A stretch of DNA of 64,000 bases from Hemiscyllium ocellatum. Its lineage: Eukaryota. A program made the position numbers and the translations under genes. Within the stretch, counting starts at the first letter, position 1. The number at the start of each line of letters is the position of its first letter. The stretch spans positions 8,384,004 to 8,448,003 of the forward strand of contig NC_083402.1 of NCBI RefSeq assembly GCF_020745735.1, given 5' to 3'. Below the pieces are notes generated by a model. It searched no databases. It was not told the origin of the DNA and saw only the letters and a program-made list of their open reading frames with translations. This document shows, piece by piece, positions 1 to 50,630 of this stretch.

Positions 1-95
1 GGTTAGATGGGCTTCAGATTGGCATGACTGGTCGGCGCAACATCGAGGGCCGAAGGACCTGTACTGTGCTGTAATGTTCTATGTTCTATGTTCTA
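1..95 (+). mobile_element. CR1 LINE 3' end with (ATGTTCT)n tail
   Basis: gagggccgaaggacctgtactgtgctg...atgttctatgttctatgttcta matches the CR1 3' ends at about 19730-19790 and 28730-28790. Confidence 0.85.
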
Positions 96-112
96 ACCCT
101 TAGCAGAAACCG
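93..112 (-). pseudogene. 5' stub of a Siglec-15-like V exon paralog, interrupted by the CR1 insertion
   Basis: Bases 96-156 align with 23007-23062, the V1 acceptor region. Minus strand reads cctcacag|CG GTT TCT GCT AAG GGT TAG (AVSAKG*) versus cctcacag|CT TTG TCT GCT AAT GGT TGG (ALSANGW). Confidence 0.8.
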
Positions 113-594
113 CTGTGAGGGGAAAGACTGGGAGAGAGAGGATATGAACACAGCACTGGGACAGATATCAGTGTGTGGGACTGAAACTTGGAGACTCCAT
201 TCTGAGTGTGTTATTTAATGAGAACAGGTTTCGCAGCTATAATGAGAGGGAGTGAACAATTAGTAATGTAAATTCATGAGCAATCCAATACACTGGGGAC
301 AGAGTTTCAGTTCCCACCATGGCAGCTGCTGGAAATTCAATTCAGTTATTACATCAGGAATTAAACACCACTCTAATGGGAACCACGAAATCATGATCAA
401 TTGTTGGAAAAAATCCATCTGGTTCACTGATGTTCCTCAGAGAAGGGAAATACCGTCCTTACCCAGTCTGACCTGCATGTGACTCCAGTCCCACAGCAAC
501 AGAGTCAAATCTGAAACTCCCACATCAATGACAAAGAGAGACACTGAGTTGGACGAAACCAGAACAAAATGTGAAAGGAAAGTTATAGGTATGT

Positions 595-9290: not shown

Positions 9291-10025
9291 AAAAAATGAA
9301 GTCTGCAGATGCTGGAGATCACAGCTGAAAATGTGTTGCTGGTTAAAGCACAGCAGGTCAGGCAGCATCTCAGGAACAGGAAATACGACGTTTCGAGCAT
9401 AAGCCCTTCTTCAGGAATGGGAGAGAGTTTGCCAAGCAGGCTAAGATAAAAGGTAGGGAGGAGAGACTTGTGGGAGGGGCGATGGAGGTGGGATAAGTGG
9501 AAGGAGGTCAAGGTGAGGGTGATAGGCCGGAGTGGGTTGGGGGCGGAGAGGTCAGGAAGGAGGTTGCAGGTTGGGAGGGCGGTGCTGAGTTGAGGGAACT
9601 GACTGAGACAAGGTGGGGGGAGGGGAAATGAGGAAACTGGAGAAATCTGAATTCATTCCTTGTGGTTGGAGGGTTCCCAGGCGGAAGATGAGGCGCTCCT
9701 CCTCCAGTTGTCGTGTTGTTAAGTTCTGCCGGTGGAGGAGTCCAAGGACCTGCATGTCCTCAGTGGAGTGGGAGGGAGAGTTAAAGTGTTGAGCCACGGG
9801 GTGGTTGGGTTGGTTGGTCCGGGCGGCCCGGAGGTGTTCTCTGATGCGTTCTGCAAGTAAGCGGCCTGTCTCCCCAATGTAGAGGAGGCCACATCGTGTG
9901 CAGCGGATGCAATAGATGATCTGTGTGGAGGTACAGGTGAACTTGTGGCGAATATGGAAGGATCCCTTGGGGCCTTGGAGGGAAGTGAGTGTGGAGGTGT
10001 GGGCGCAAGTTTTACATTTCCTGCG
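9291..10025 (-). mobile_element. 5'-truncated Penelope-like element (GIY-YIG C-terminus plus pLTR)
   Basis: ICCIRC..CGLLYIGETGR / VAQHFNSPSH / EEERLIFRLG motifs. 15-bp TSD gttgaactgaagggt at 9276-9290 and 10026-10040. Confidence 0.93.
9382..9418 (-). ncRNA. Minimal type I hammerhead ribozyme motif in Penelope pLTR
   Basis: CUGAAGA-A-GGGC(UUAU)GCUC-GAAACGUC, matching the CUGANGA/GAAA core with GUC cleavage triplet. Confidence 0.7.
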
Positions 10026-10039
10026 GTTGAACTGAAGGG

Positions 10040-10505
10040 TCTGCTCCTGTGCTGTATGACTCTATAACTGATTATAGCTGGGGAAAGGTTGGTATAGATG
10101 CTGAAGATGGGGAGGGGGGAGGAGGCAGGAGTAAACACTCAGTGGGAAGGGACCCCAGACAGAGAGAAAAACAATTGGACAGACAAACGAAAGGAGAAAG
10201 GTCGGCCTGGGAGAATGAACAGCTGCTGATGGGGACCATGCGTCACTGACAATGGATTGTTTTGGTAGTAGCCCATGTGATGACAAGGCCTGGTGTGTGG
10301 GGATTGGGGGAAGGAGGTAGGAGAAGGTGCTGAGGCCCTAAAATTATTCACCCCAATATTGAGTCCAGAAGGTCACTGGGTCCCCAAAAGCTGGAGTGTT
10401 GATCTGGCAAGCAACTGGATGCTCAGCATCATTTTTGCGGACGAACATTTCGGTTCTGCAAAGTGGTCACCCAGTCTGTGTTTTGTTTACCCAATACAGA
10501 GTTAG
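10040..10505. mobile_element. Older Penelope-like fragments
   Basis: Purine-rich 3'UTR-like sequence and a LYWVNKTQTG / QLLARSTLQL GIY-YIG-like remnant on the minus strand. Confidence 0.5.
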
Positions 10506-11660: not shown

Positions 11661-12008
11661 CATGTACCTGCAGCCGAGTCTCTTTCTGGATCAGATACTG
11701 AGAATCAGGTTCTGACCTGTATTCCACCAGACACAGGTAAGTGTGATTGTCCCTCACACTCAGCTGGTTTATCCTGGTTGAGACGTTTCCCTCCTCTGGG
11801 TTCCCGATGAGCTCGTACCGATTTCCACCGTGTACAGTTGTCCAATTTCCCTGTGATTGGGCTGTAAATGTAACAATGTGTTGGTAGGGCTCCTTTCTCA
11901 TCCAGGTAACAGTGGTCAGGGTGTGGGAGTCCCAGCGACTGAAGATACAGGGTAAAGTGACTGAATCTCCCTCTGTCCCACTCACCACTGAGACATTTTC
12001 CTGAGAAG
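11661..12008 (-). CDS. Ig V-set exon (V2), Siglec-like fold without the essential Arg
   Basis: 348 nt, phase 1-1, acceptor tgtcctttcctcag, donor G|gtaaga. Open frame with VTLPC...VTWMRK...RYELIGNP...DNHTYLCLVE...TRLQV. Confidence 0.9.
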
Positions 12009-12722: not shown

Positions 12723-14288
12723 TGCGGGAGTGGTTGTGAGTGTCTGTAAAAGAGTGTGTGCATGTGTGTGTGTGTGTTTGTGCGGGAGTGGTTGTGAGTG
12801 TCTGTAAAAGAGTGTGTGCATGTGTGTGAGTGTGAGTATAAAGGGGTATAAGTCTGTAGGAGGGCGCATGTGTGAGTGTGGGAGTGTATGAGAGAGGATC
12901 TGCGTGTGTGTGTGTGTGTGTGTGTGTGTCTTGTGTGTATGTGTGTCTCTGTATATGTGTGTGTAAAGTGTTCTCTGACTGGGGATGAGGGGAACACCCC
13001 TGTCTGTTGATTGCTGTACGGTGCCCATCCATCCGTTGCCATAGCCCCTGCTTGGTCTCACCAATGCAGCATGCCTCAGGGCATCCTTGCCTGCAGCGAA
13101 TGGGATAGACAACGTTGGCTGAGTTGCATGAGTACCTGCCACATACTGCAGTCTGGGACATTCAACCTTGGACTTTCAGGTGACCATCCTCCAAGGCGGA
13201 CTTCGGGACAGGCAGCAACAAAAAGTGGCCGAGCAGAGGCTCTTGGCCAAGTTCGGTCCCCATGGGGATGGCCTCAACTGGGATCTTGGGTTCATGTCAC
13301 ACNNNNNNNNNNNNNNNNNNNNNNNNNNNNNNNNNNNNNNNNNNNNNNNNNNNNNNNNNNNNNNNNNNNNNNNNNNNNNNNNNNNNNNNNNNNNNNNNNN
13401 NNNNNNNNNNNNNNNNNNNNNNNNNNNNNNNNNNNNNNNNNNNNNNNNNNNNNNNNNNNNNNNNNNNNNNNNNNNAAACACACACAGAGACACTCCTACA
13501 GACGCACACATTTACACACAAACACACACACACACACAAACAAACACAGACACTCTCACACACACACACACACAGACACTCTCTCTCATACACACACAGA
13601 CACTCCGACGGACACATGAGGCAGACCCTCTCTCATATGCTCACACATACATTCACACAATCACACATGCCCCTCTCACAGACGTATACCCCTTTATACT
13701 CACACACATGCACACACTCTTTCACAGACACTCACAAACACACCCTCCCCCCCTTCCACACCCCTGCCCACCCCCCCTCCCCGACACACACACACACACA
13801 CACACACGGACGCGGACGCGCACACATGCACATATAAGTTTGTGGGGGTGAATTTGTACTGCAGTGTTACATTTTACATTGCACAAAACTGCATGAATCC
13901 ATGTAAGATTCGATAAATTCAATTTTTTTAGATGAGAATCAGTCTAAACATTATGGCACAGACAGTATCACCCAGGGGAGCTCACACCTTCAATGCATTA
14001 TCTGGGCTGACAGACACCAATTGTTAAAGTTCACTTGAGAATGGAGCTTTTAAAAAAGAATTGTGATTTGCATATAAAAGCACTGAAACCAACATGGTCA
14101 TTCTAACGGATGAGAGACTTAACAAACTATCCTGGTCTTTTTCAACATATAATTTCAGTGACATCACACGATAAAAATTTGCTGTAAGTTCTGTGACTTA
14201 CAATCTTATACTCCACTATCACCTGATGAAGGAGCAGCACTCCAAAAGCTAGTGCTTCCAAATAAACCTGTTGGACTATAACCTGGTG
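12233..14288. mobile_element. Divergent inverted pair of Penelope-like 3' ends spanning an assembly gap
   Basis: 12233-12690 is the near-identical reverse complement of 13825-14288. GIY-YIG remnants CNSANVVYPIRC..IGETKQ (-) and VTILQGG..EQRLLAKFG (+). TG/CA-rich UTRs. Degenerate hammerheads at 12266-12300 (-) and 14220-14254 (+). Confidence 0.88.
13303..13475. other. Assembly gap (173 N)
   Basis: Run of N. Confidence 1.
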
Positions 14289-15773: not shown

Positions 15774-18682
15774 AACCCCCCCAAAGAAAAAAAATGAACC
15801 ATCATAATGAAAAGATGTCTCCATTTTTTGCCTAATTCTTAAGCCCATGACAATGAAATACATAGGATATTAACTTAAGTTCATATTAATTTCCTCACAC
15901 ATATGTATAACATTGGTATCTGTTCAATTTTATTTAAAATTTATCCATTAAACTTGCGATAATGTTGTATAGCCAGTACCAAACTCAATAATTCCTTTTC
16001 AATGGTAGAATATTTTTCTCTGGTGGGTGTTGAGTTTCTTTGAAAAGTAACCAACTGTCTATTCAATTCCACCATCACCTTCCTGTAGCAGTATAGCCTC
16101 AAGTCCAATATCATGAGCATCGATTGCAACTTTGAGTGCAATATTTGGTGCAGCTAAAACTGGAGCCACGGTTAATACAACTCTTACATTGTCAAGTGCC
16201 TCCTGGCATTGTTCCATCCACCGAAATGTTGTGTTCTTCTTCAGGAAATCCGTGAGTGAAGTCACTACCCTGCTGACATTTGGAACAAACTTCCAGGAGA
16301 ATCCACTTAGTCCCCAAAATCAAAGCACTTCTTTCTTTGAGGTTGTTTGTGGAAATTCCTCGATGGTCTTTGTCTTTGCATTCCTGAGGGTCAACCTTTC
16401 ATGACCGATGTTATCTCCCGATAATGTCTCCTCTGCCTTCGCAAATTGTGTTTTCTTTAATTTTATTACCGTTTAGCTTCTCTTAATCGTTCAAAGAGCT
16501 GTGTGCCAACTGTACCATGTGATCTTTCCATGGCTCACTAAAGATCACTGCACCATCCAGATATACTGCACAGTTTGTTAACACAGCCACACCTCTGTTT
16601 ATGAGCTTTTTAAATGTGGCTGCGTGTGTTCTTCATTCCAAAGGGCAGCACTTTGAATTGACATAACCCATTTGGGGTGACAAACGCAGAAATTTATTTC
16701 ACTTTCTCTGATAAAGGGATGACAATGCCCAAACAGTAAGTCCAACTTTGTGATGTAAGGGGCTGGTTAAACTTTCTCTATACAGTCCTCCAATGTTAGT
16801 ATTGATCTGAGTCTGATTTTGTAATGGACTTGACCTTCCAATGGTCCACGCAACTAACACAATCATCGAACTCCACTTGCTTTGACTCAGTTCGATGATA
16901 GCTTCATTGAGCATTGCATCCACTTCCTTCTGGATCTGTGTGGCTTTGAAAGGATTAAGCCTGTAGGTGTGTTGTTTTATTGGAACAGCATTCCCTACTT
17001 CTACCTCATGCACAATAGGATCAGGCCTCTCCATCATATTCCTGCATATGTCCTTATACTGCTGCAACAATCCTTTCAACTGGTTCTTTGTTCCTGGGAC
17101 AGATTGTACACTAACCTATCCCATCTCCTCAAGGACTTCTTTATTGTTTAATGTATTTTAAGGCAATCAAACTGCACAACATGAGATTTGATTCCTCACT
17201 CTGTGGGGCAGTAACTAACACCTGTTCCTCCAGTTCCCCCTCTCTATTATAATAATGTTTCAACATATTCACATGACATTCCCAATTCAGTGTTTTTCCT
17301 GTCCAGCATCTTTACCAGATAGTTTACCTGACTCAACTTTTTTCTCAATTTGTCAGGGACCATAGAACCTGACTTTGAAAGCATATCCTGTCATTGGTAA
17401 CAATACTAACACGTCATCCCCACGGGAAATTTTCTGAATTCCGGAGTTTTTATCTGCCACCTGCTTCAATCTACACTGCACCCTCTTTCAGTGCTGTTTA
17501 GCTAACTCATCTGCCTGATTTAATCTCTCTCACCTCTGATACATAATCCATGTGTGTGACCTCTGACTTCTGTCCTGTCTATTTCTCTTTAATTAATTTC
17601 AAAGTATCTCTCACTTCATGTCCGAATATTTACTTAAAGGGAGTGAACTGAGTAGCTTCATTTGAGCCATCTCTAATGGCAAACAATATGAATGGGATAC
17701 CTTCATCCCAATCAATCAGGTAATCCTGACAGCACATTCTTAACATGGGCTTCAGGGTCTGATGCCACCTTTCCAAAGCTTCCTGAGTTTCAGGATGATA
17801 TGCACTTGGTTTAATGTGCTGTATGCCTCATCTATCCATGACTTCTTTAAACAGATGAGCAATAAAATTAGACAATGGTCTGACTGAATCTCTCTGGGTA
17901 GCTCATACCAAGTGAAGAAAGCTACTAACTCCTCTACCACCCATTTTGTCTTAATGCTCCGTAATGGAATTGCATCCGGAAATCTGGGAGACACACCCAT
18001 TATGGTTAGCAAGTACTGGTTCCCACTTATAGGGAGGGAACCTACACAATCATTATAACTAACATGAAAGGTTCTTCAAACGTGGGAACTAGCAACAAAG
18101 GTGTTGGGTTTACTGCTTTGGCTCACCGACCACTTGGCCTGTATGACACATACAGCAAAAGTTAACAACATCTTTGTGCATCCCAGGCCAATACAACAGC
18201 TTTTGTACCTTAGTCTGAGACTTCCTTACACTGAGGTGACCTCCTACTGGGAGTTCATGTGCTCTATGGAACATCTCCTGTCTGTATGCTACCAGCAACA
18301 CAATCTGGTGCAAGTTGAGTGATATGAGTTTTTAAACTCGTCAGCAGAATAACCTCTCCCAGAGCCTCAAAGGTCCTATCTATCTTTAAAGCACGTACCC
18401 ATCTGTCAAAATGACTGATTAATTCTTTCAAACTCAATACAAATCTGACTTGGTTCCTTCTTTATATTTCTGAACCACTGTCTATACATTTCTCATAAGC
18501 ACTCAATATAGCCTGTTTGACATCATCATAATCTCTTGACCCCTCATCTGACAGCACTGCAAATACCTCACTCGCTCTGCCTACCAGCTTATTCTGAACT
18601 AGCATTACACAGAGGGTCCCTGACCACTCCCTATGCCGAGCCAAATTGTCAAATGAAATAAAAAAGTTTTCATCAAAATGTG

Positions 18683-19315: not shown

Positions 19316-20071
19316 CGCTCTCTTTGCTCTGCTAACAACATTCTTTCTCTTTCTTTTTTACTCTCTTTTTCCTTTCTCTTTCATCTCTTTCTCTCTCCCA
19401 TTCTTCTCTTTCTCTCTCTCTCTGTCTCTTTCCCTCTATTTATTGTCTCTCTCTCTTCATTTCTTCTCCTTTGGCTCTTCTTTCCTTTTCTTTACCTTCT
19501 AACTCCATTTTCCTCAATTGTAAACTAAATTTTTCTAACTCTCCTGCACTTCTCTGTTTCTCTGACACACCAAAGTGCTTGACTGACTCCCTTACAATTT
19601 CAGCTTCCCCATGTCCCTGCTTAGATCCAATTCTCAGGGAGATTTAAACAATCCTTTGATAAGAACATGGATGATGATGGGATAGTGTAGAGGGATGAAC
19701 TGAGAATAGTTCACATGTCGGCACAATATCGAGGGCCGAAGGGCCTGTTCTGTGTTGTATTGTTCTATGTTTTATGTTCTATGTTCTAACCTCAATGCTA
19801 ATTCTAAAAGTATGACCTTTTGCTGATTTTTCTAAACTTTCTTGGCAAATTTGGAACCATTTTCAAACTGCAGAACGTCTTCAGCAATTTTAAGAGCCAT
19901 TTCTCTCACTTTTAATTTAACCAACCACAAATAACTGAAATTAAACCAATTCTCTCACCTACATTTTCTTTAAAGATCTCGGACACTAATCGGCAAGTGT
20001 TCAAATCTGCTGGGATCTTTTGTACCCAAATCTTTCCAAATCTCAGACTGGATCTGTCTGAACCCGTCCAA

Positions 20072-22636: not shown

Positions 22637-23023
22637 CTTTCACTTCCAGGCGTGTTCCTTTTCTAGATCCAAACTTTTCAATATTGAGCTCCACACGACA
22701 CCGATAGGAACCAGCATCCTCCCGGCTCAGTCCCTCCATCATTATTGAGGCATCTTTGTTGGTGAGGTTCCCCACGAATCTGAATCGATTCCCACCGTCC
22801 CGCTGTATCACATTCTCACACAGCTCACCCTGGGAATGGTCTGGACCAGGATCTGTACAGTTAAAGATAAAAGCCCGTGTTTCCTCCTTGTACCATAAGA
22901 TGGAGCCAGTGAGTGTGAGGTTAGTGTCAGGGTGGGTGAAGCTGCAGGGTAAGACAGCGGAGCCTCCTTCCTCAGCCCACACTCCATCCACGATCGTCAT
23001 TGACCAACCATTAGCAGACAAAG
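22637..23023 (-). CDS. Siglec-15-like Ig V-set exon (V1) retaining the sialic-acid-binding Arg
   Basis: 387 nt, phase 1-1, acceptor ctctcccctcacag, donor G|gtgagg. SAVLPCSFTHP, extra Cys pair FNC...GELC, RFRFVGN and YRCRVE parallel the Siglec-15 motifs AAVLPCTFTHP, FRC...SELC, RFRLLGN and YFCRVE. Confidence 0.9.
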
Positions 23024-23779
23024 CTGTGAGGGGAGAGAGAGAGGATATGAACACAGCACAGACACCAAACAGTGAGGTAAAACACTGAATCTGTTATTTA
23101 GTGAGAAAAGATATAATATGATACAATTGTGATTTCTGAACAGACTAGTGACAGAGTGGAATGAGCTCCGGGCTGGATACAAGACAGGTCTTCAGGTGGT
23201 TTGTAAACATCCTGAGGTTAGACTTGGTGGTGTGGGGGCGGGGGGTGGGGGGGGGGGCGGGTGCGGGGAGGACCCACAGTGATGTGAAGAGCAGGACTCA
23301 GGGCCCTCCCTGCAGAACCTTTTCTATTTCCTATCACCTTCTATTCTATTACCGAGCCAGCCTTCAGCAACCTGGCTCATTCATCAGGCGTAGCAGAGGG
23401 ATGGGGGATGCAGTGGAAGTATTGTTGGGGTGTGGTGGGGGTGGGGGGGTGGGGAGCGGGGGTTGGATACAGAGAGACATGAAGATGGAAAAAAGTAAAC
23501 TGAAGTAAAAAAGTAAACTCACCATTGTGCAAGAGAACTCCTGTCTCATTAAAGGAAGTTATGACTGGTAATGATTTAACCTAAGGGTCACTCTGCCTCA
23601 GACAAGGGGCAAGGTTGAGAAGATTGGATTTTCATGGTCACCTCAGACAATATGAGAATTAAACATCCCTTGCTGGCATCACTCCACATCACAGACCAAC
23701 TGTCCAGCCAACTGAGCTAACTGACAGTGACATGGCAATCCAAGTCAATCCAGAAGGCAGTGTGAATATCATCAAGGGA

Positions 23780-26999: not shown

Positions 27000-28790
27000 A
27001 TCCGCTTATCTTTGTAGAAAAGCTTAAAGATAAGATTTCAGGTTATACAGATGGAGCTTAGATCTGCAGATGGAGAGGTGCCAGAAGACAGGAGGAAAGC
27101 CATGATTCAAGAAGTGAGCAAGGGATTAACCAGGTATCTACAGGCCAGTCAGTCTAACCTCGGTGGTTGGGAAACTATGGAAGCAATTCTGAGGGGCAGA
27201 ATTCATCTACGCTTCAGAGGTGGAGATGGATCAAAAACAGACAGAATGGTTTTGTTAAGGAAAGCGAGGCAGAAAATGGGATACGATAGGCTGTTTAGCC
27301 TGACCTCGGTTATTTGAAAGATTTTACAGTCCAACATTAAGAACGAGATTGTGGAGAAGAACAAGTTCTTGAGGAGGTGATAAGACAGGTCGACAAAGGT
27401 CAAGCAGTTGATATGGTGTATATGGACTTCAGCAAGGCATTTGATAAGCTTCCACATAGTAGGCTCATTCAAAATGTCAGGAAGTATGGGATACAGGGAG
27501 ATTTGTCTATTTGGATTCAGAATTGGTTGGCTAACAGAAGGCAGAGTGAGGCTGTCGATGGAAAGTATTCTGCCTGGAAGACAATGATGAGCGGCGTCCC
27601 ACTGGGCTCTGCTCTTTGTAGTTTTAAAAAATGACTTGGATGAGAAGGTTGTGGGGTGGGATAGTAAATTTGCAGTTGACATAAAGTTTAGAGGTGCCGT
27701 TGATAATATTGAGGGTTATTGCAGGCTGCAGCGCGACATAGACAGGATGCAGATCTGGGCTGAGAAATACAAGGAGTTCAACCTGGATAAATGTGAAGTG
27801 ATGCATTTTGGAAGGTCAAAATCGAATGATGAATATAGGATTAAAGACAGGATTCTTGGCAGTGTAGAGGAACAGAGGGATCTGGGTGTGCAAGCACAAT
27901 GATCCCTCAAAGTTGCCACCCAAGTGGATAGGGTTGTTAAGAAAGCATATGGTGTTTCGGCTTTCATTAACAGGGGGATTTAGTTTAAGAGCCGTAAGAT
28001 TTTGCTACAGCTCTACAAGTCCCTGGTGACACTTGGAATATTGTGTCCAGTTCTGGTCGGCCTACTATAGGAAAGATACAGAGGCTTTGGAGAGGGTGCA
28101 AAGAAGGTTTACCAGGATGCTGCCTGGACTGGAGAGCTTGCCTTATGAAGAAAGGTTGAATTAGCTCGGACATTTCTCTCTGGAGAGAAGGAGGACGAAA
28201 GGAGACCTGATCGAGGTGTACAAGATAATGAGATGATTTGGAGATGCCGGTGTTGGACTGGGGTGTACAAAATTAAAAATCATACAACAACAGTTTATAG
28301 TCCAACGGGTTTAATTGGAAGCACACTAGCTTTCGGCACGATGTTCCTTCACCTGATCACTTGATGAAGGAACGTCGCTCCAAAAGCTAGTGTGCTTCCA
28401 GTTAAACCTGTTGGACTATAACCTGGTGTTGTGTGATTTTTAAGATAATGAGAGGAATAGATAGAGTCAATAACCAGAGACTTTTCCCCAGGGCATGATT
28501 GACTGGTACGAGGGATCTTAGTTATAAGATGTTAAGAGAAAGATATTGAGAAGATGTCAGAGGTAGGCTCTTTACACAGAGAGTTGCGAAAGCAAGGAAT
28601 GCATTGCCAGCAGTGGTGGTGATGGAAGCAGAGCCATTAGGGACATTTACGTGATTGCTGGACATGAACATGCATAGCCGTGAGTTGAGGGGTGTGTAGT
28701 TTACGTTAGGATTAAACATTGGCACAACATCGTGGGCCGAAGGGCCTGTTCTGTGCTGTACTTTGTTATGTTCTATGTTCTAAGTTCTAA
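27000..28790 (+). mobile_element. CR1 LINE RT region and 3' tail, split by a palindromic insertion
   Basis: VDMVYMDFSKAFDKLPH, LQRDIDRMQIWAEK motifs and (gttcta)n tail near 28785. Confidence 0.9.
28234..28441. mobile_element. Palindromic mini-Penelope pLTR (AGCU-hammerhead family)
   Basis: Fold-back centred near 28355. 12-bp TSD aagataatgaga at 28222-28233 and 28442-28453. Confidence 0.85.
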
Positions 28791-36373: not shown

Positions 36374-36403
36374 TGTGACCCCGTACTGAGACTGACAGCA
36401 GGA
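36374..36403 (-). other. Candidate 30-nt microexon of unknown role
   Basis: ctctctctgtttgtctttctgcag|30 nt|gtaagt, consensus splice signals in non-repeat DNA. Confidence 0.5.
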
Positions 36404-36849
36404 CTGCAGAAAGACAAACAGAGAGAGACCTCATCGTTAATATTTCACCATTTCATCCTTCTCACTCACTTACTCTTGTCCTTTTACAGAAGTTACTTGA
36501 CTTCCTGCCAAATAAATGTGAGGCAATCATACACGATACGAACAACAAACGGGAAGTCCATGTACGGTCAGTAGGAGCTGAGAGAATGACAAAGCTATTC
36601 TAAAACAGAGGCACCAACCACAGCAACCGTTCAGAAAAAGCTTCCAACACAATTCTCAAAATCATCAACTTCAGCATCAAACACTCCGTGAGCTGGGGCA
36701 GGACAGTGTTAAAGACAGAGTAAAGCTCTTTCAGCACTGTCTCCATCAAACACTCCCAGGACAGCCACAGCTCAGGGTTGGATCCAGAGTAAAACTCCTT
36801 CTACTTTTTAAAATTGAAATTAACCAGAAGGAAAGCACCTTTACATTGT

Positions 36850-40400: not shown

Positions 40401-41560
40401 ACCCCCCTGCCATACTAGTTTAAACCCTCCTGAACCACTCGAGCAAACCTCCCACCCAGGACATTGGTCCCCTTCCAGTTCAGGTGCAACCCGTCCTTCA
40501 TGTGCAGGTCCCACCTTCCCCAGAAGACATCCCAATTATCTACATATCTGAAGCGCTCCCTCCTACTCCAGCTGTGCAGCCACATGTTAAGCTGCGCCCT
40601 CTCCCTGTTCCTCGCCTCTCGTGTCACCAGTAGTAAACCTGAGAACACTACTCTGTTCGTCCTGCTCTGCAGCATCCACCCTAACTCCCTGAAATCACTT
40701 TTTATATCCTCAATCCTTTTCCTGGCTATATCATTGGTGCCAATATGCAACACAATTTCTGGTTGTTCGCCCTCCCCTTTCAGAATCATATACACCCAAT
40801 CGGAGACATCCCGGACCCTGGCACCAGGAGGCAACATACCTTCCGGGAATCCCCATCCTGACCACACAATCTCCTGTCAATTCTCCTAACATTCGAGTCC
40901 CCTACCACTTGTGCTTTTCTATTCTGCCCCCCTTCCCTTCTGGGCTCAGTGCCAGAGAACTGACCACGATGGCTTTCCTCTGGTCGGTCATTCCCCCCCG
41001 CCAGCAGTATCCAAAACGATATACTTATTGCTGAGGGGAATGTCCACAGGGGATCTCTGCACTGTCTGTCTGTTCCCTTTCCTCCCCCTGACTGTAACCC
41101 ATCTATCCTTATCCTGAGCCTCAGGAGTGACCAACTGCCGGTAACTCCTCTCAATTACCCCCTCAGCCTCCCGAATGATCCACAGTTCATCCAGCTCCAG
41201 CTCCAATTCCCTAACACAGTTTTCACGGAGCTGGAGTTGGGTGCACTTCCCGCAGATGTAGCCAGCGGAGACGTGTGTCATGTCTCTCACCTGCCACATT
41301 CTGCAGGAGGAGCAAGCCGCCTTGCTAATATATATGGTCACTTACTTTCCTTCCCAGCAGCCCCTCTGGTCCGTGTCACTTCCCCCACTGCTCCCACTCC
41401 TACCGTGGAGGAAAAACACCACCGGTCACTCCCGGTAAGTAATGTTAAACATCTCCTTTACCTTAGCTGTAGCCTTCCTGGTTCACCTTACCTCCGCTGC
41501 TGCTCCCACTCTAAAAGGTCGCTGGCGTCGAAGGGTAAGTACTTATAGTCACTCCTTTCC
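37455..41560 (-). mobile_element. Near full-length CR1 LINE (ORF1 zinc finger and esterase; ORF2 APE and RT), frameshifted
   Basis: CSSCRMW..CGKCTQLQL (40988-41341), VLHIGTNDI esterase (40415-40867), NARSIRNK..VAITE..GVYYRP..DFNFP APE (39727-40341), RT ORFs to 37524. Confidence 0.95.
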
Positions 41561-50595: not shown

Positions 50596-50630
50596 CTAAT
50601 GTGTGTCCATAACAGCTGCATAGGTTACAT
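50596..50630 (-). CDS. Last coding exon of an ITIM-bearing receptor tail (DVTYAAVMDTH*)
   Basis: Acceptor tctgtatctttctagcag, phase 1, VTYAAV ITIM, TAG at 50596-50598, then GA|gtgagt. Confidence 0.8.

Follow-up and report, generated by a model that had tools for sequence, protein, structure and literature searches.

Genes at the Locus

The window is the whole 64,000-nucleotide stretch of Hemiscyllium ocellatum DNA analysed here. The stretch 22637-23023 on its minus strand is exon 2 of LOC132826572, an immune-receptor gene of the epaulette shark that is called gene B below. It is an open exon of 387 nt with phase 1 at both ends, an AG acceptor and a GT donor. An earlier sequence-only reading had placed a lectin domain at 22637-23023, and these coordinates are the exact limits of the exon.

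Three coding exons of gene B lie in the window, all on the minus strand. Exon 1 (36374-36434) begins with the ATG at 36434, encodes the signal peptide MRSLSVCLSAVLLSVSVRGH that starts the protein P0207, and ends at a GT donor at 36373-36372. Exon 2 encodes V1, a V-set domain of the Siglec-15 type (P0207 residues 21-150). Exon 3 (11661-12008) encodes a second V-set domain, V2 (residues 151-265). All splice sites of gene B in the window are AG/GT. Splicing of 36434-36374, 23023-22637 and 12008-11661 gives 265 residues, and all 265 are identical to the N-terminus of P0207 (XP_060698522.1), the H. ocellatum LOC132826572 product, which carries the RefSeq label “uncharacterized protein”.

P0207 is a type I membrane receptor. 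Its signal peptide is followed by V1 and V2, then by an uncharged transmembrane (TM) segment and about 115 residues of cytoplasmic tail. The TM segment, VYSLVIPLLILLLLLIISIIVIIFITF, contains no charged residue. The tail contains the motifs ILYAEI, CTYASI and VTYAAV, of which ILYAEI and VTYAAV are its two canonical ITIMs. TM segment and tail are taken from the RefSeq model, where they lie outside the window. LOC132826572 spans 73.6 kb (GCA_020745735.1), and the window holds its first 36 kb. Because of this span, the TM and tail exons fall beyond the window, and a tblastn search with family tails (word size 2, E up to 1000) found none below 11661. Two hydrophobic stretches considered as TM exons are spurious: 1736-1662 is a TG microsatellite, and 11148-11014 is SINE-like.

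A second gene, gene A, ends inside the window at higher coordinates than the V1 exon, likewise on the minus strand. Its tail comprises six AG/GT-bounded exons that splice to the peptide YTQKIEHTTSLKRNDPGSSSIPETDQVQQTTIPDQDSSILYAEIDSNRTAQPDSCTYASIVFDSNRKVQDDKSLSVAESEETDVTYAAVMDTH and a stop, with the motifs ILYAEI and VTYAAV. The membrane-proximal cytoplasmic exon (61835-61874) encodes (G)YTQKIEHTTSLK. Next comes 58803-58864, encoding RNDPGSSSIPETDQVQQTTIP, which has tblastn matches to family tails. The first ITIM, ILYAEI, is carried by 53376-53423 (DQDSSILYAEIDSNRT), which matches the P0195 and P0207 tails at 94% identity. The exon at 51262-51315 (AQPDSCTYASIVFDSNRK) is 83-91% identical to family tails; its YxxI motif does not fit the canonical ITIM. 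It is followed by 51132-51173 (VQDDKSLSVAESEE) and by the last coding exon (50596-50633), which has an AG acceptor, encodes (T)DVTYAAVMDTH with the second ITIM, VTYAAV, and ends in the stop codon TAG at 50598-50596. This last exon is 82-83% identical to family C-termini.

The splicing of the gene A tail is validated by the orthologue model of a bamboo shark, P0274. That model reads “KGDKSL” at the junction of 51173-51132, which suggests a nearby alternative acceptor in gene A, possibly 6 nt downstream at 51167. A degenerate mini-exon (GNKRFTISASED) at 53248-53283 lacks usable splice sites, being flanked by “aat” on the acceptor side and “ac” on the donor side. Its equivalent is used in paralogues, where it reads GGKRFTNSLSE, and is skipped in P0274.

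Gene A is probably LOC132829859, as judged from a peptide match: the product of 61874-61835 is identical to the C-terminus of P0226 and occurs nowhere else among the roughly 320 proteins compared. P0226, its RefSeq product, has the same V1-V2 ectodomain as gene B. The sequence-only reading had proposed an ITIM-tailed gene immediately upstream in the same orientation and had noted that an unrelated ectodomain in this gene would speak against a receptor family. Six intact tail exons between 61874 and 50596 bear out the first point, and the ectodomain proves to be a related one. The gene that contains the V1 exon is itself ITIM-tailed as well.

At the start of the window, in intron 3 of gene B, lies a relic of a further V1-type exon (95-156, minus strand). 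It is 80.6% identical to 23006-23059 (blastn, E 9e-12) and consists of about 18 nt of the start of a V1 exon (95-112) and the intron upstream of it (113-156). The alignment suggests that weaker intron similarity runs on towards 260. Directly after “...AVSAKG” there is an in-frame stop. The relic is truncated by the end of a dispersed repeat, a transposon tail, at 1-96. Six other copies of this repeat occur in the window at 74-89% identity (blastn), for instance at 19717-19781 and 28721-28783; neither a direct-repeat finder nor an exact-match search with the window start picked them up. By these alignments the element at 95-156 is a dead, transposon-truncated exon, and it does not appear in the RefSeq protein, since P0207 consists of V1 and V2 only. 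The stub at 93-112 that had been read as a paralogue is thus homologous to V1, but it is no working gene.

The neighbourhood raises the question whether exon 22637-23023 might itself be a non-functional duplicate. The region is rich in repeats and holds both the V1-type relic at 95-156 and the dead mini-exon of gene A. The exon, however, has an open frame, intact splice sites and every structural residue, and it matches exactly a RefSeq model spliced over introns of 13 kb and 10 kb. That it is a pseudogene exon is therefore hardly credible.

The V1 and V2 Domains

Residues of V1 are numbered here within the exon; adding 20 gives the precursor numbering. The B-F cysteines are C27 and C109, and an extra pair is formed by C56 and C69. 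RFRFVGN occupies positions 80-86 and YRCRVE positions 107-112. Together with W7 and F118, the two cysteine pairs and R110 are the key residues of the domain. Each of the Siglec-15 hallmarks that had been named for 22637-23023 (B-F disulfide, extra cysteine pair, RFRxxGN, and the arginine of YxCRVE) is present.

The best match of V1 among sequences in the PDB is human Siglec-15 (7zoz_A, HMMER E 2.2e-13), and the next is CD33 (E 1.5e-6), with bit scores of 53.6 and 31.4. The Pfam V-set family is matched at E 2.9e-13. In the HMMER alignment to 7zoz_A, the cysteines and R110 of V1 align with C64-C142, C95-C104 and R143, as described for the Siglec-15 crystal structure (PMC10264397). R110, W7 and F118 correspond to human R143, W44 and Y154. 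Thus W44, C64, C95, C104, C142 and R143 are kept in V1, and Y154 is replaced by phenylalanine. Human Y87, which hydrogen-bonds the O9 of sialic acid, is an arginine in V1.

Structure prediction gives a similar picture. The AlphaFold2 model of V1 has an overall pLDDT of 83, and Foldseek places 7zoz_A first; Siglec V domains make up all of the top 22 hits and nearly all of the list. The model is weak at residues 61-80 (pLDDT 55-58), a stretch that contains C69, one partner of the extra disulfide, whose modelled geometry is thus tentative. In the ESM Atlas the neighbours are generic V-set domains, such as nectin and CD22-like ones. As aligned, V1 is a Siglec-15-type V-set domain in which both disulfides, the arginine and two aromatic ligand contacts are kept.

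V2 reads YLCLVEY, with a leucine where V1 has the essential arginine, and lacks the extra cysteine pair. It is 33% identical to V1 (E 3e-11) and matches the Pfam V-set family at E 1.5e-17. Its best PDB match is again the V domain of Siglec-15 (E 5e-10); domains of the polymeric immunoglobulin receptor (pIgR) come second. On this similarity V2 arose long ago by internal duplication of a Siglec-15-type V domain and has lost the arginine; it probably serves as a spacer.

A Multigene Family in Elasmobranchs

An exhaustive protein search returned 317 matches, the closest of which are dozens of elasmobranch proteins. Homologues at E<=1e-5 amount to 90 cluster representatives, almost all of them from sharks, rays or skates. 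H. ocellatum alone has at least 15 RefSeq loci of the family, 12 of them on one chromosome of 153.6 Mb. The multigene family that had been suspected is therefore real, and the absence of V1 paralogues, which would have counted against it, is not what was found. Members of the family have up to six domains (P0278). Some members carry the RefSeq name “polymeric immunoglobulin receptor-like”.

When TM segments and tails are classified, as the sequence-only reading had advised, two signalling types emerge. One combines an uncharged TM segment with an ITIM tail, the other a TM lysine with a short tail. The consensus (S/I/V/L)xYxx(I/V/L) behind an uncharged TM segment is found in P0207, and gene A encodes it in exons 53423-53376 and 50633-50596. 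Paralogues of gene B such as P0234 and P0214 have the TM lysine, and the TM motif of the lysine-bearing sister genes is IPLGxK, as in true Siglec-15.

The two types have very similar ectodomains. Within a species, ectodomain identity between the activating and the inhibitory type ranges from 68 to 96%. In H. ocellatum, P0234 (TM lysine) and P0207 (ITIM) share 77% of V1 and 84% of V2, and in Heterodontus the values are 89-90% for V1 and 94-96% for V2. On the V1 tree the types are interleaved, with 9 changes of signalling type over 35 rows. Similar ectodomains joined to opposite signalling modules within one genome are what defines paired receptors. The near-identity of ectodomains between ITIM-bearing and TM-lysine sisters suggests that the family works as paired inhibitory and activating receptors.

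Between elasmobranch orders, V1 identity falls to 50-60%. The key residues are conserved all the same: among 204 family domains, W7 is kept in 185, C27 in 198, C56 in 195, C69 in 191, C109 in 202 and R110 in 183. An aromatic residue at position 118 is also retained across the family. Of the 73 V1 domains found in ITIM-bearing proteins, 72 have the arginine; of the 47 in TM-lysine proteins, 8 have lost it.

Relation to Siglec-15

In the V1 tree, the family forms one clade of 44 sequences with support of 100/100. Siglec-15 of bony vertebrates forms a second clade (99/88), and chondrichthyan proteins of V-V-C2 architecture a third (99/93), both distinct from the family. The order of these three clades is weakly supported (77/14). 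In the protein search, chondrichthyan and lungfish V1-type proteins rank highest; the named relatives from other vertebrates that come below them are Siglec-15 proteins from birds, mammals, frog, teleosts and paddlefish.

V1 shares many features with Siglec-15 (7ZOZ, and the proteins of birds, frogs, teleosts, gar and lungfish). Both have the B-F disulfide, an unusual C'-C'' disulfide, the F-strand arginine, the N-terminal tryptophan, a G-strand aromatic residue and the motif RFRxxGN. The TM motif PLGxK of Siglec-15 recurs in the activating paralogues of the family. The differences lie outside V1. The second domain of gene B is a V-set duplicate and not a C2-set domain, its TM segment is uncharged and followed by an ITIM tail, and the gene is multicopy and fast-evolving, whereas Siglec-15 is a conserved single-copy gene.

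Membership in established groups is divided. The N-terminal V-set domain with Siglec fold, F-strand arginine and A- and G-strand aromatics that marks a Siglec is found in V1; the C2-set domain expected to follow is absent, with no such domain between V2 and the TM segment of P0207. V1 likewise has both V-domain disulfides of the Siglec-15 orthologue group. P0207 lacks the TM lysine and short tail of that group, and instead of a conserved one-to-one gene there is a separate clade with at least 15 loci.

A better candidate for the orthologue exists. A separate, conserved chondrichthyan gene encodes two V-set domains, a C2-set domain and a TM segment with lysine (P0297 in Heterodontus, P0290 in Pristis, P0026 in Callorhinchus), and this gene is a better Siglec-15 orthologue than gene B. 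Its domains are of the V1 and V2 types, as in the family, and its V2 domains cluster with those of the family in the tree. The C2-set domain, which gene B does not have, is retained. In sharks and rays the TM segment reads MLCLIPL[IV]KFLLLLITGIILF, with a tail of 11-12 residues, and its motif type LC(L)IPLxK is common to the activating members of the family; the TM-lysine version of the chimaera is more divergent. The near invariance of TM segment and short tail across sharks and rays suggests a gene that is conserved and not amplified. In P0290 and P0297 the V1 arginine is lost and replaced by leucine.

Could exon 22637-23023 nevertheless belong to the shark orthologue of Siglec-15 itself? 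Its best solved relative is human Siglec-15. Yet P0207 has neither a C2-set domain nor a TM lysine, carries ITIMs and has many paralogues. In the tree, each of the three V1 clades stands apart with good support, and the highly conserved V-V-C2 gene suits the role better. Such an orthology is very improbable.

Comparison with Other Receptor Families

A parallel in overall logic is provided by the CD33-related Siglecs of mammals, with pairs such as Siglec-5/14 and Siglec-11/16. Like the shark family, they form a fast-evolving tandem cluster, combine ITIM-bearing members with DAP12-type activating members, and show near-identical ligand-binding domains within a pair and occasional loss of the arginine. 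Their ancestry is different. V1 matches Siglec-15 at E 2e-13 and CD33 at 1.5e-6, and so its nearest V domain is not of the CD33 type. The shark tails carry CTYAxI and VTYAAV instead of LxYAxL and TEYSEV-type motifs, and the architecture is V-V instead of V-C2n. An expansion independent of the CD33-related Siglecs had been suggested beforehand, and the tree that had been called for agrees with it: the family clade (100/100) stands apart from the CD33-type and bony-vertebrate Siglec-15 domains.

Another set of likenesses is found in “Siglec-15-like” ITIM models from caecilians, newt, eel, sturgeon and paddlefish (P0271, P0272, P0316, P0317, P0320 and P0115). These join a Siglec-15-type V domain to an uncharged TM segment and a two-tyrosine tail, as do the ITIM members in sharks. 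Their architecture is V-C2 and they are few-copy as far as seen, in contrast to the multicopy V-V family of sharks. The caecilian and newt tails read (D/E)xCTYADI ... (E/D)VTYA(A/T/V)V, close to the shark DSCTYAxI ... VTYAAV. The shark and caecilian tails align over 43 residues with a pairwise E of 1e-5, a match confined to short motifs and thus a lead and not a result. VTYAxV-type ITIMs occur in unrelated receptors too.

Elasmobranchs are already known to possess one multigene set of modular Ig receptors, the MDIRs of skates, which have either ITIMs or a charged TM segment (PMC3031540). MDIRs are reported to resemble CD300, pIgR and TREM and not Siglecs. It is conceivable that the two families are the same. 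MDIRs have one to six Ig domains. In a skate they are described as multigenic, with activating and inhibitory forms similar to pIgR, CD300 and TREM (PMC3031540). The RefSeq names after pIgR, the pIgR domains in second place among the PDB matches of V2, and family proteins with up to six domains such as P0278 are in line with such an identity. V1, however, is clearly similar to Siglec-15 and not to CD300 or pIgR. Furthermore, the 90 and 35 named representatives of two family searches include no Raja eglanteria protein, although other skates are present. The identity of the family with the MDIRs is thus quite improbable.

No published description of an elasmobranch Siglec-15-like family was found in the literature. 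The novelty lies in the interpretation, as the genes are already present in RefSeq as automatic models.

Proposed Function

The data support the view that V domains of the Siglec-15 type gave rise, in cartilaginous fish, to a family of many genes, some inhibitory and some activating, as had been conjectured from the single exon. Gene B is accordingly read, with a probability of roughly three in four, as a member of a tandemly amplified elasmobranch family of Siglec-15-type paired receptors, with V1-V2, an uncharged TM segment and an ITIM tail, that would damp leukocyte activation. The analysis establishes the identity of the gene, its exons, domain homology and motifs, and the size and two signalling types of the family; ligand binding, signalling and expression are predictions.

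The mechanism would start with the binding of a sialylated ligand by V1, for which lectin activity is predicted. In Siglec-15, the essential arginine forms a salt bridge with the carboxylate of sialic acid. After ligand binding, the two ITIM tyrosines of the gene B product would be phosphorylated and would recruit SHP-type phosphatases, which in turn would damp the activation of the leukocyte bearing the receptor. The TM-lysine sister receptors presumably pair with a DAP12-like adaptor.

A different ligand is also conceivable. The family may consist of paired receptors whose V1 no longer reads sialic acid and instead recognizes a protein or pathogen ligand, by analogy with KIR, LILR, SIRP and PILR-type receptors; the arginine would then be a structural leftover. 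V1 diversifies fast by lineage, as its 50-60% identity between orders indicates, and interleaved signalling types, as seen on the tree, are a usual trait of paired receptors driven by pathogens. The replacement of Y87 and the 8 TM-lysine V1 domains without arginine fit as well. Zebrafish Siglec-15, with its arginine kept, is reportedly a poor binder of the glycans tested (PMC7226832), and thus conservation of the arginine is no proof of lectin activity.

Such a change of ligand is at odds with the retention of the arginine in nearly every ITIM-bearing protein and in 183 of 204 domains overall, and with that of W7 and the aromatic residue at 118. Retention of the arginine over several hundred million years, with losses mainly in activating copies, is the pattern of the sialic-acid-binding CD33-related Siglecs, and the pattern in the shark family resembles it. 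The loss of sialic-acid recognition is therefore considered unlikely, and a sialylated ligand remains the preferred reading.

Evolutionary Significance

The tail motif DSCTYAxI ... VTYAAV shared with the caecilian and newt models suggests that the inhibitory arm may be ancient rather than an invention of sharks. One tentative scenario, on balance doubtful, extends this idea. The ancestor of jawed vertebrates would have had a pair of Siglec-15 genes, one activating with a TM lysine, the other inhibitory with an uncharged TM segment and a CTYAxI...VTYAAV tail. The pair would have been amplified in elasmobranchs to a fast-evolving cluster of megabase size, and amniotes and most teleosts would have kept the activating gene alone.

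If this scenario is true, the elasmobranch cluster fills the role of the mammalian CD33-related Siglecs, and paired receptors have been using sialic acid to recognize “self” for more than 400 million years. Likewise, the lone, conserved activating Siglec-15 of textbooks would be a derived state.

Siglec reviews and fish studies describe non-mammalian vertebrates as having only four conserved Siglecs, and Siglec-15 as a single, activating, DAP12-coupled receptor (PMC7226832; bioRxiv 10.64898/2026.08.25.746757). An elasmobranch family with ITIM and TM-lysine members would alter both statements. Fast-evolving paired Siglec-like receptors would not be confined to mammals, and they would have at least two origins, from different Siglec ancestors.

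Siglec-15 is a current target of immunotherapy. The V1 domains of the family, some of which have lost the essential arginine, form a natural set of variants in which Siglec-15 ligand specificity can be studied. For shark immunology, its members are candidate innate checkpoint receptors, and the family provides a way to date the origin of inhibitory sialic-acid sensing.

V1 and its likeness to Siglec-15

V1 is a Siglec-15-type V-set domain encoded by exon 2 of gene B (LOC132826572). The exon is open over its 387 nt (23023-22637, minus strand), has cacAG before it and GTgagg after it, and is in phase 1 at both ends. The sequence-only reading had placed the domain at 22637-23023, which are the exact exon boundaries, with AG acceptor and GT donor. 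Its 129 codons, with a split first codon read as Ala, include four cysteines (27, 56, 69 and 109) and the motifs RFRFVGN at 80-86 and YRCRVE at 107-112.

When V1 is compared with all PDB sequences by phmmer, human Siglec-15 (7zoz_A) ranks first (E 2.2e-13) and CD33 second (1.5e-6). In the phmmer alignment, W7 of V1 corresponds to W44 of human Siglec-15, C27 to C64, C56 to C95, C69 to C104, C109-R110 to C142-R143, and F118 to Y154. In the human structure, C64-C142 is an inter-sheet bond and C95-C104 an unusual bond in the C'-C'' loop; R143 forms a salt bridge with sialic acid, W44 and Y154 provide CH-pi contacts, and Y87 bonds the sialic-acid O9 (PMC10264397). The residues named there are the same positions that align with V1, with the sole exception of Y87, whose place in V1 is taken by Arg. 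An AlphaFold2 model of V1, built from a 75-sequence alignment, has a mean pLDDT of 83 and is weak at residues 61-80. In a Foldseek search of the PDB with this model, 7zoz_A comes first, followed by sialoadhesin, CD33, Siglec-7, -8 and -10, and MAG. Given the alignment, the conserved residues and the Foldseek ranking, the Siglec-15 hallmarks of V1 are real and far beyond chance. Those originally listed (B-F disulfide, extra Cys pair, RFRxxGN, Arg) all fall on matching positions of 7zoz_A.

The gene, its exons, the domain homology, the motifs and the structure of the family are direct observations. By analogy with other Siglecs, V1 would bind a sialylated ligand through R110 (R130 in the precursor). 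The main rival explanation is that V1 was re-tasked to a ligand other than sialic acid. In its favor, Y87 is poorly conserved and is Arg in V1, and zebrafish Siglec-15 has been reported to bind glycans weakly (PMC7226832).

Gene B

Searching the window by tblastn with retrieved relatives places a signal-peptide exon at 36434-36374 and a second V-set exon, V2, at 12008-11661, both on the minus strand. The three exons spliced together encode 265 residues, of which 265/265 are identical to the N-terminus of P0207 (XP_060698522.1), the RefSeq product of the gene, labeled “uncharacterized protein isoform X2” of Hemiscyllium ocellatum LOC132826572. Gene B spans 73.6 kb in assembly GCA_020745735.1, and its TM and tail exons therefore lie beyond coordinate 1. 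Because they are outside the window, sensitive window searches below 11661 find no TM or tail exons of gene B and hit nothing but a microsatellite and a stretch resembling a SINE.

In the RefSeq model, the V domains of P0207 are followed by a stalk, an uncharged TM VYSLVIPLLILLLLLIISIIVIIFITF, and a tail with the canonical ITIMs ILYAEI and VTYAAV and, in addition, CTYASI. Gene B is thus itself of the inhibitory type. This corrects the initial picture of V1 beside an ITIM gene: the neighbor stands, and the gene of V1 has an ITIM-type tail of its own. As in known ITIM receptors, the ITIM tyrosines would recruit SHP phosphatases and so damp leukocyte activation.

V2 shares 33% identity with V1, and the solved domain closest to it is again the V domain of Siglec-15 (E 5e-10), not the C2 domain. 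Leu stands at the position of the essential arginine (YLCLVEY), and the extra cysteine pair is absent; the WxxxEPY motif, in which human Y87 lies, is retained. V2 derives from an early duplication of a Siglec-15-type V domain and, judged by these features, is not a lectin domain.

The 10-kb intron between V1 and V2 holds long ORFs with retrotransposon pol features at about 15900-18400 (minus strand), namely reverse transcriptase, RNase H and integrase-like stretches. It also holds an assembly gap of 173 N (13303-13475), with TG/CA-type microsatellite on both sides whose translation gives long runs of C-V or H-T. A repeat at 9323-10029 carries a GIY-YIG-like ORF (9555-10061, minus strand) and has an inverted copy, 87% identical, at 59171-59875 within an intron of gene A.

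A paralog stub had been noted at 93-112. Positions 95-156 do match 23006-23059 at 80.6% identity, covering roughly the first 18 nt of a V1-type exon and its upstream intron. The V1-type homology thus holds; a working paralogue does not, the stub adjoining a dispersed repeat (1-96, with six further copies in the window) and running into a stop codon. Some paralogues have more than two domains, such as P0195 (V1-V2-V1-V2) and P0278 (six domains). The simplest reading of the stub is a dead exon for a third domain, lying in intron 3 of gene B.

The upstream gene

Gene A, probably LOC132829859, lies upstream on the same strand. Between 61874 and 50596 (minus strand) lie six exons with AG/GT boundaries that encode a complete tail with its stop codon and the motifs ILYAEI, CTYASI and VTYAAV. 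The first of them encodes YTQKIEHTTSLK. Among about 320 retrieved proteins, only P0226, the V1-V2-TM product of H. ocellatum LOC132829859, contains this peptide, at its C-terminus. The P0226 model ends in SLKR-stop (61833-61840) by read-through of the donor site (AAA AG/GTAG, giving KR-stop). The bamboo-shark orthologue model P0274 has the same exon chain. The intact exons, the P0226 match and the usage in P0274 establish that the upstream ITIM-tailed gene is real and, as its V1-V2 ectodomain shows, of the same family as gene B. The H. ocellatum annotation probably misses its inhibitory isoform.

Between the two ITIM exons of gene A lies a mini-exon homologue, GNKRFTISASED (53283-53248, minus strand), in which both splice sites, the AG acceptor and the GT donor, have been lost; its equivalent is still used in paralogues such as P0207 (GGKRFTNSLSE). 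At 51167-51173 (minus strand), two in-frame acceptors 6 nt apart are possible (cag/TTCAAG/ATGAC), giving ...NRK-VQDDKSL or ...NRK-DDKSL; orthologue models have KGDKSL. A tandem repeat at 56703-57444 has a unit of about 325 bp at 98% identity. A repeat-derived ORF at 41105-41317 (minus strand; ...CSSCRMWQVRD...ELELELDEL...) aligns with the last 70 residues of several Narcine family models (P0010 and isoforms), and these ray gene models probably run into a transposon.

A multigene family with two signaling types

An exhaustive HMMER search yields 317 matches, 62 of them at E<=1e-10. Named cluster members, together with a word-indexed search using a full-length family member, give about 90 representatives at 90% identity from sharks (Hemiscyllium, Chiloscyllium, Stegostoma, Rhincodon, Heterodontus, Scyliorhinus, Mustelus, Cetorhinus, Carcharodon, Heptranchias, Pristiophorus) and from rays and skates (Narcine, Hypanus, Hemitrygon, Mobula, Leucoraja, Amblyraja, Rhinoraja). 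The proposal that Siglec-15-type domains are multigene in cartilaginous fish is borne out by at least 15 loci in H. ocellatum alone, 12 of them on the window's chromosome.

The genes are already RefSeq models, under inconsistent automatic names (Siglec-15, -10, -12, JAML-like, pIgR-like, A33-like, CD33-like, HAVCR1-like, sialoadhesin-like). Skate MDIRs, reportedly described by Cannon et al. in 2006, are possibly an earlier description of the family; Raja eglanteria proteins are absent among the named family matches. In the literature searched, no description of the family was found. Fish Siglec papers give only Siglec-1, CD22, MAG and an activating Siglec-15 (PMC7226832), and Siglecs go unmentioned in a review of cartilaginous-fish immunity from 2019 (PMC6795676).

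Classification by TM and tail separates two types. Inhibitory members have an uncharged TM and a tail about 100 residues long, with [VI][TI]YA[AE]V at its end. Activating members have a TM lysine, in (I/L)PLGxK(T/L)LxLLVM, and a tail of 10-25 residues; this motif is similar to the one in true Siglec-15 (bird VPLGIKVLILLV, teleost LPLGAKVLLLL). By analogy with Siglecs and ITIM receptors, the activating members may signal via a DAP12-like adaptor. Within a species, ectodomain identity between the two types is 68-96%; V1 identity between different orders is only about 50-60%.

The essential arginine is kept in 72/73 V1 domains of ITIM proteins, whereas 8/47 V1 domains of TM-lysine proteins have lost it, counts that are not phylogenetically independent. 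The asymmetry recalls the CD33-related Siglec pairs of primates. The arginine is missing in, among others, the activating genes of H. ocellatum, which read CYVEL, and of C. punctatum, which read CHVEL. Among TM-lysine members, the replacement is Y in P0234, H in P0232 and P0004, L in P0290 (Pristis) and P0297 (Heterodontus), and S, C, G or K in others.

Relationship to Siglec-15

A maximum-likelihood tree of 70 V1 domains, Siglec-15 sequences included and V2 domains as root, separates the window's family (44 rows, support 100/100, long stem) from bony-vertebrate Siglec-15 (99/88). A third clade (99/93) holds chondrichthyan V-V-C2 proteins; the order among the three is supported at 77/14 only. 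The V-V-C2 group shares the V1-V2 arrangement with the window's family but keeps the C2 domain typical of Siglec-15, which the family lacks. In its lysine-type members from sharks and rays, the TM MLCLIPL[IV]KFLLLLITGIILF is almost invariant and the tail has 11-12 residues; the chimaera TM-lysine anchor is more divergent. As a candidate Siglec-15 orthologue, the V-V-C2 group fits better than the window's family.

On the same tree, the activating or inhibitory state requires 9 changes over 35 scored rows. These reflect either repeated exchange of signaling modules or homogenization of ectodomains within lineages. Both processes are typical of paired receptors.

Models that combine a Siglec-15-type V domain, a C2 domain and an ITIM tail also occur in caecilians, a newt, eels, sturgeon and paddlefish. 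The caecilian and newt tails, (E/D)xCTYADI...(E/D)VTYA(A/T/V)V, are close to the shark DSCTYASI...E(N/D)VTYAAV. The likeness of these short motifs suggests that an inhibitory Siglec-15 paralogue may be older than the split between cartilaginous and bony vertebrates.
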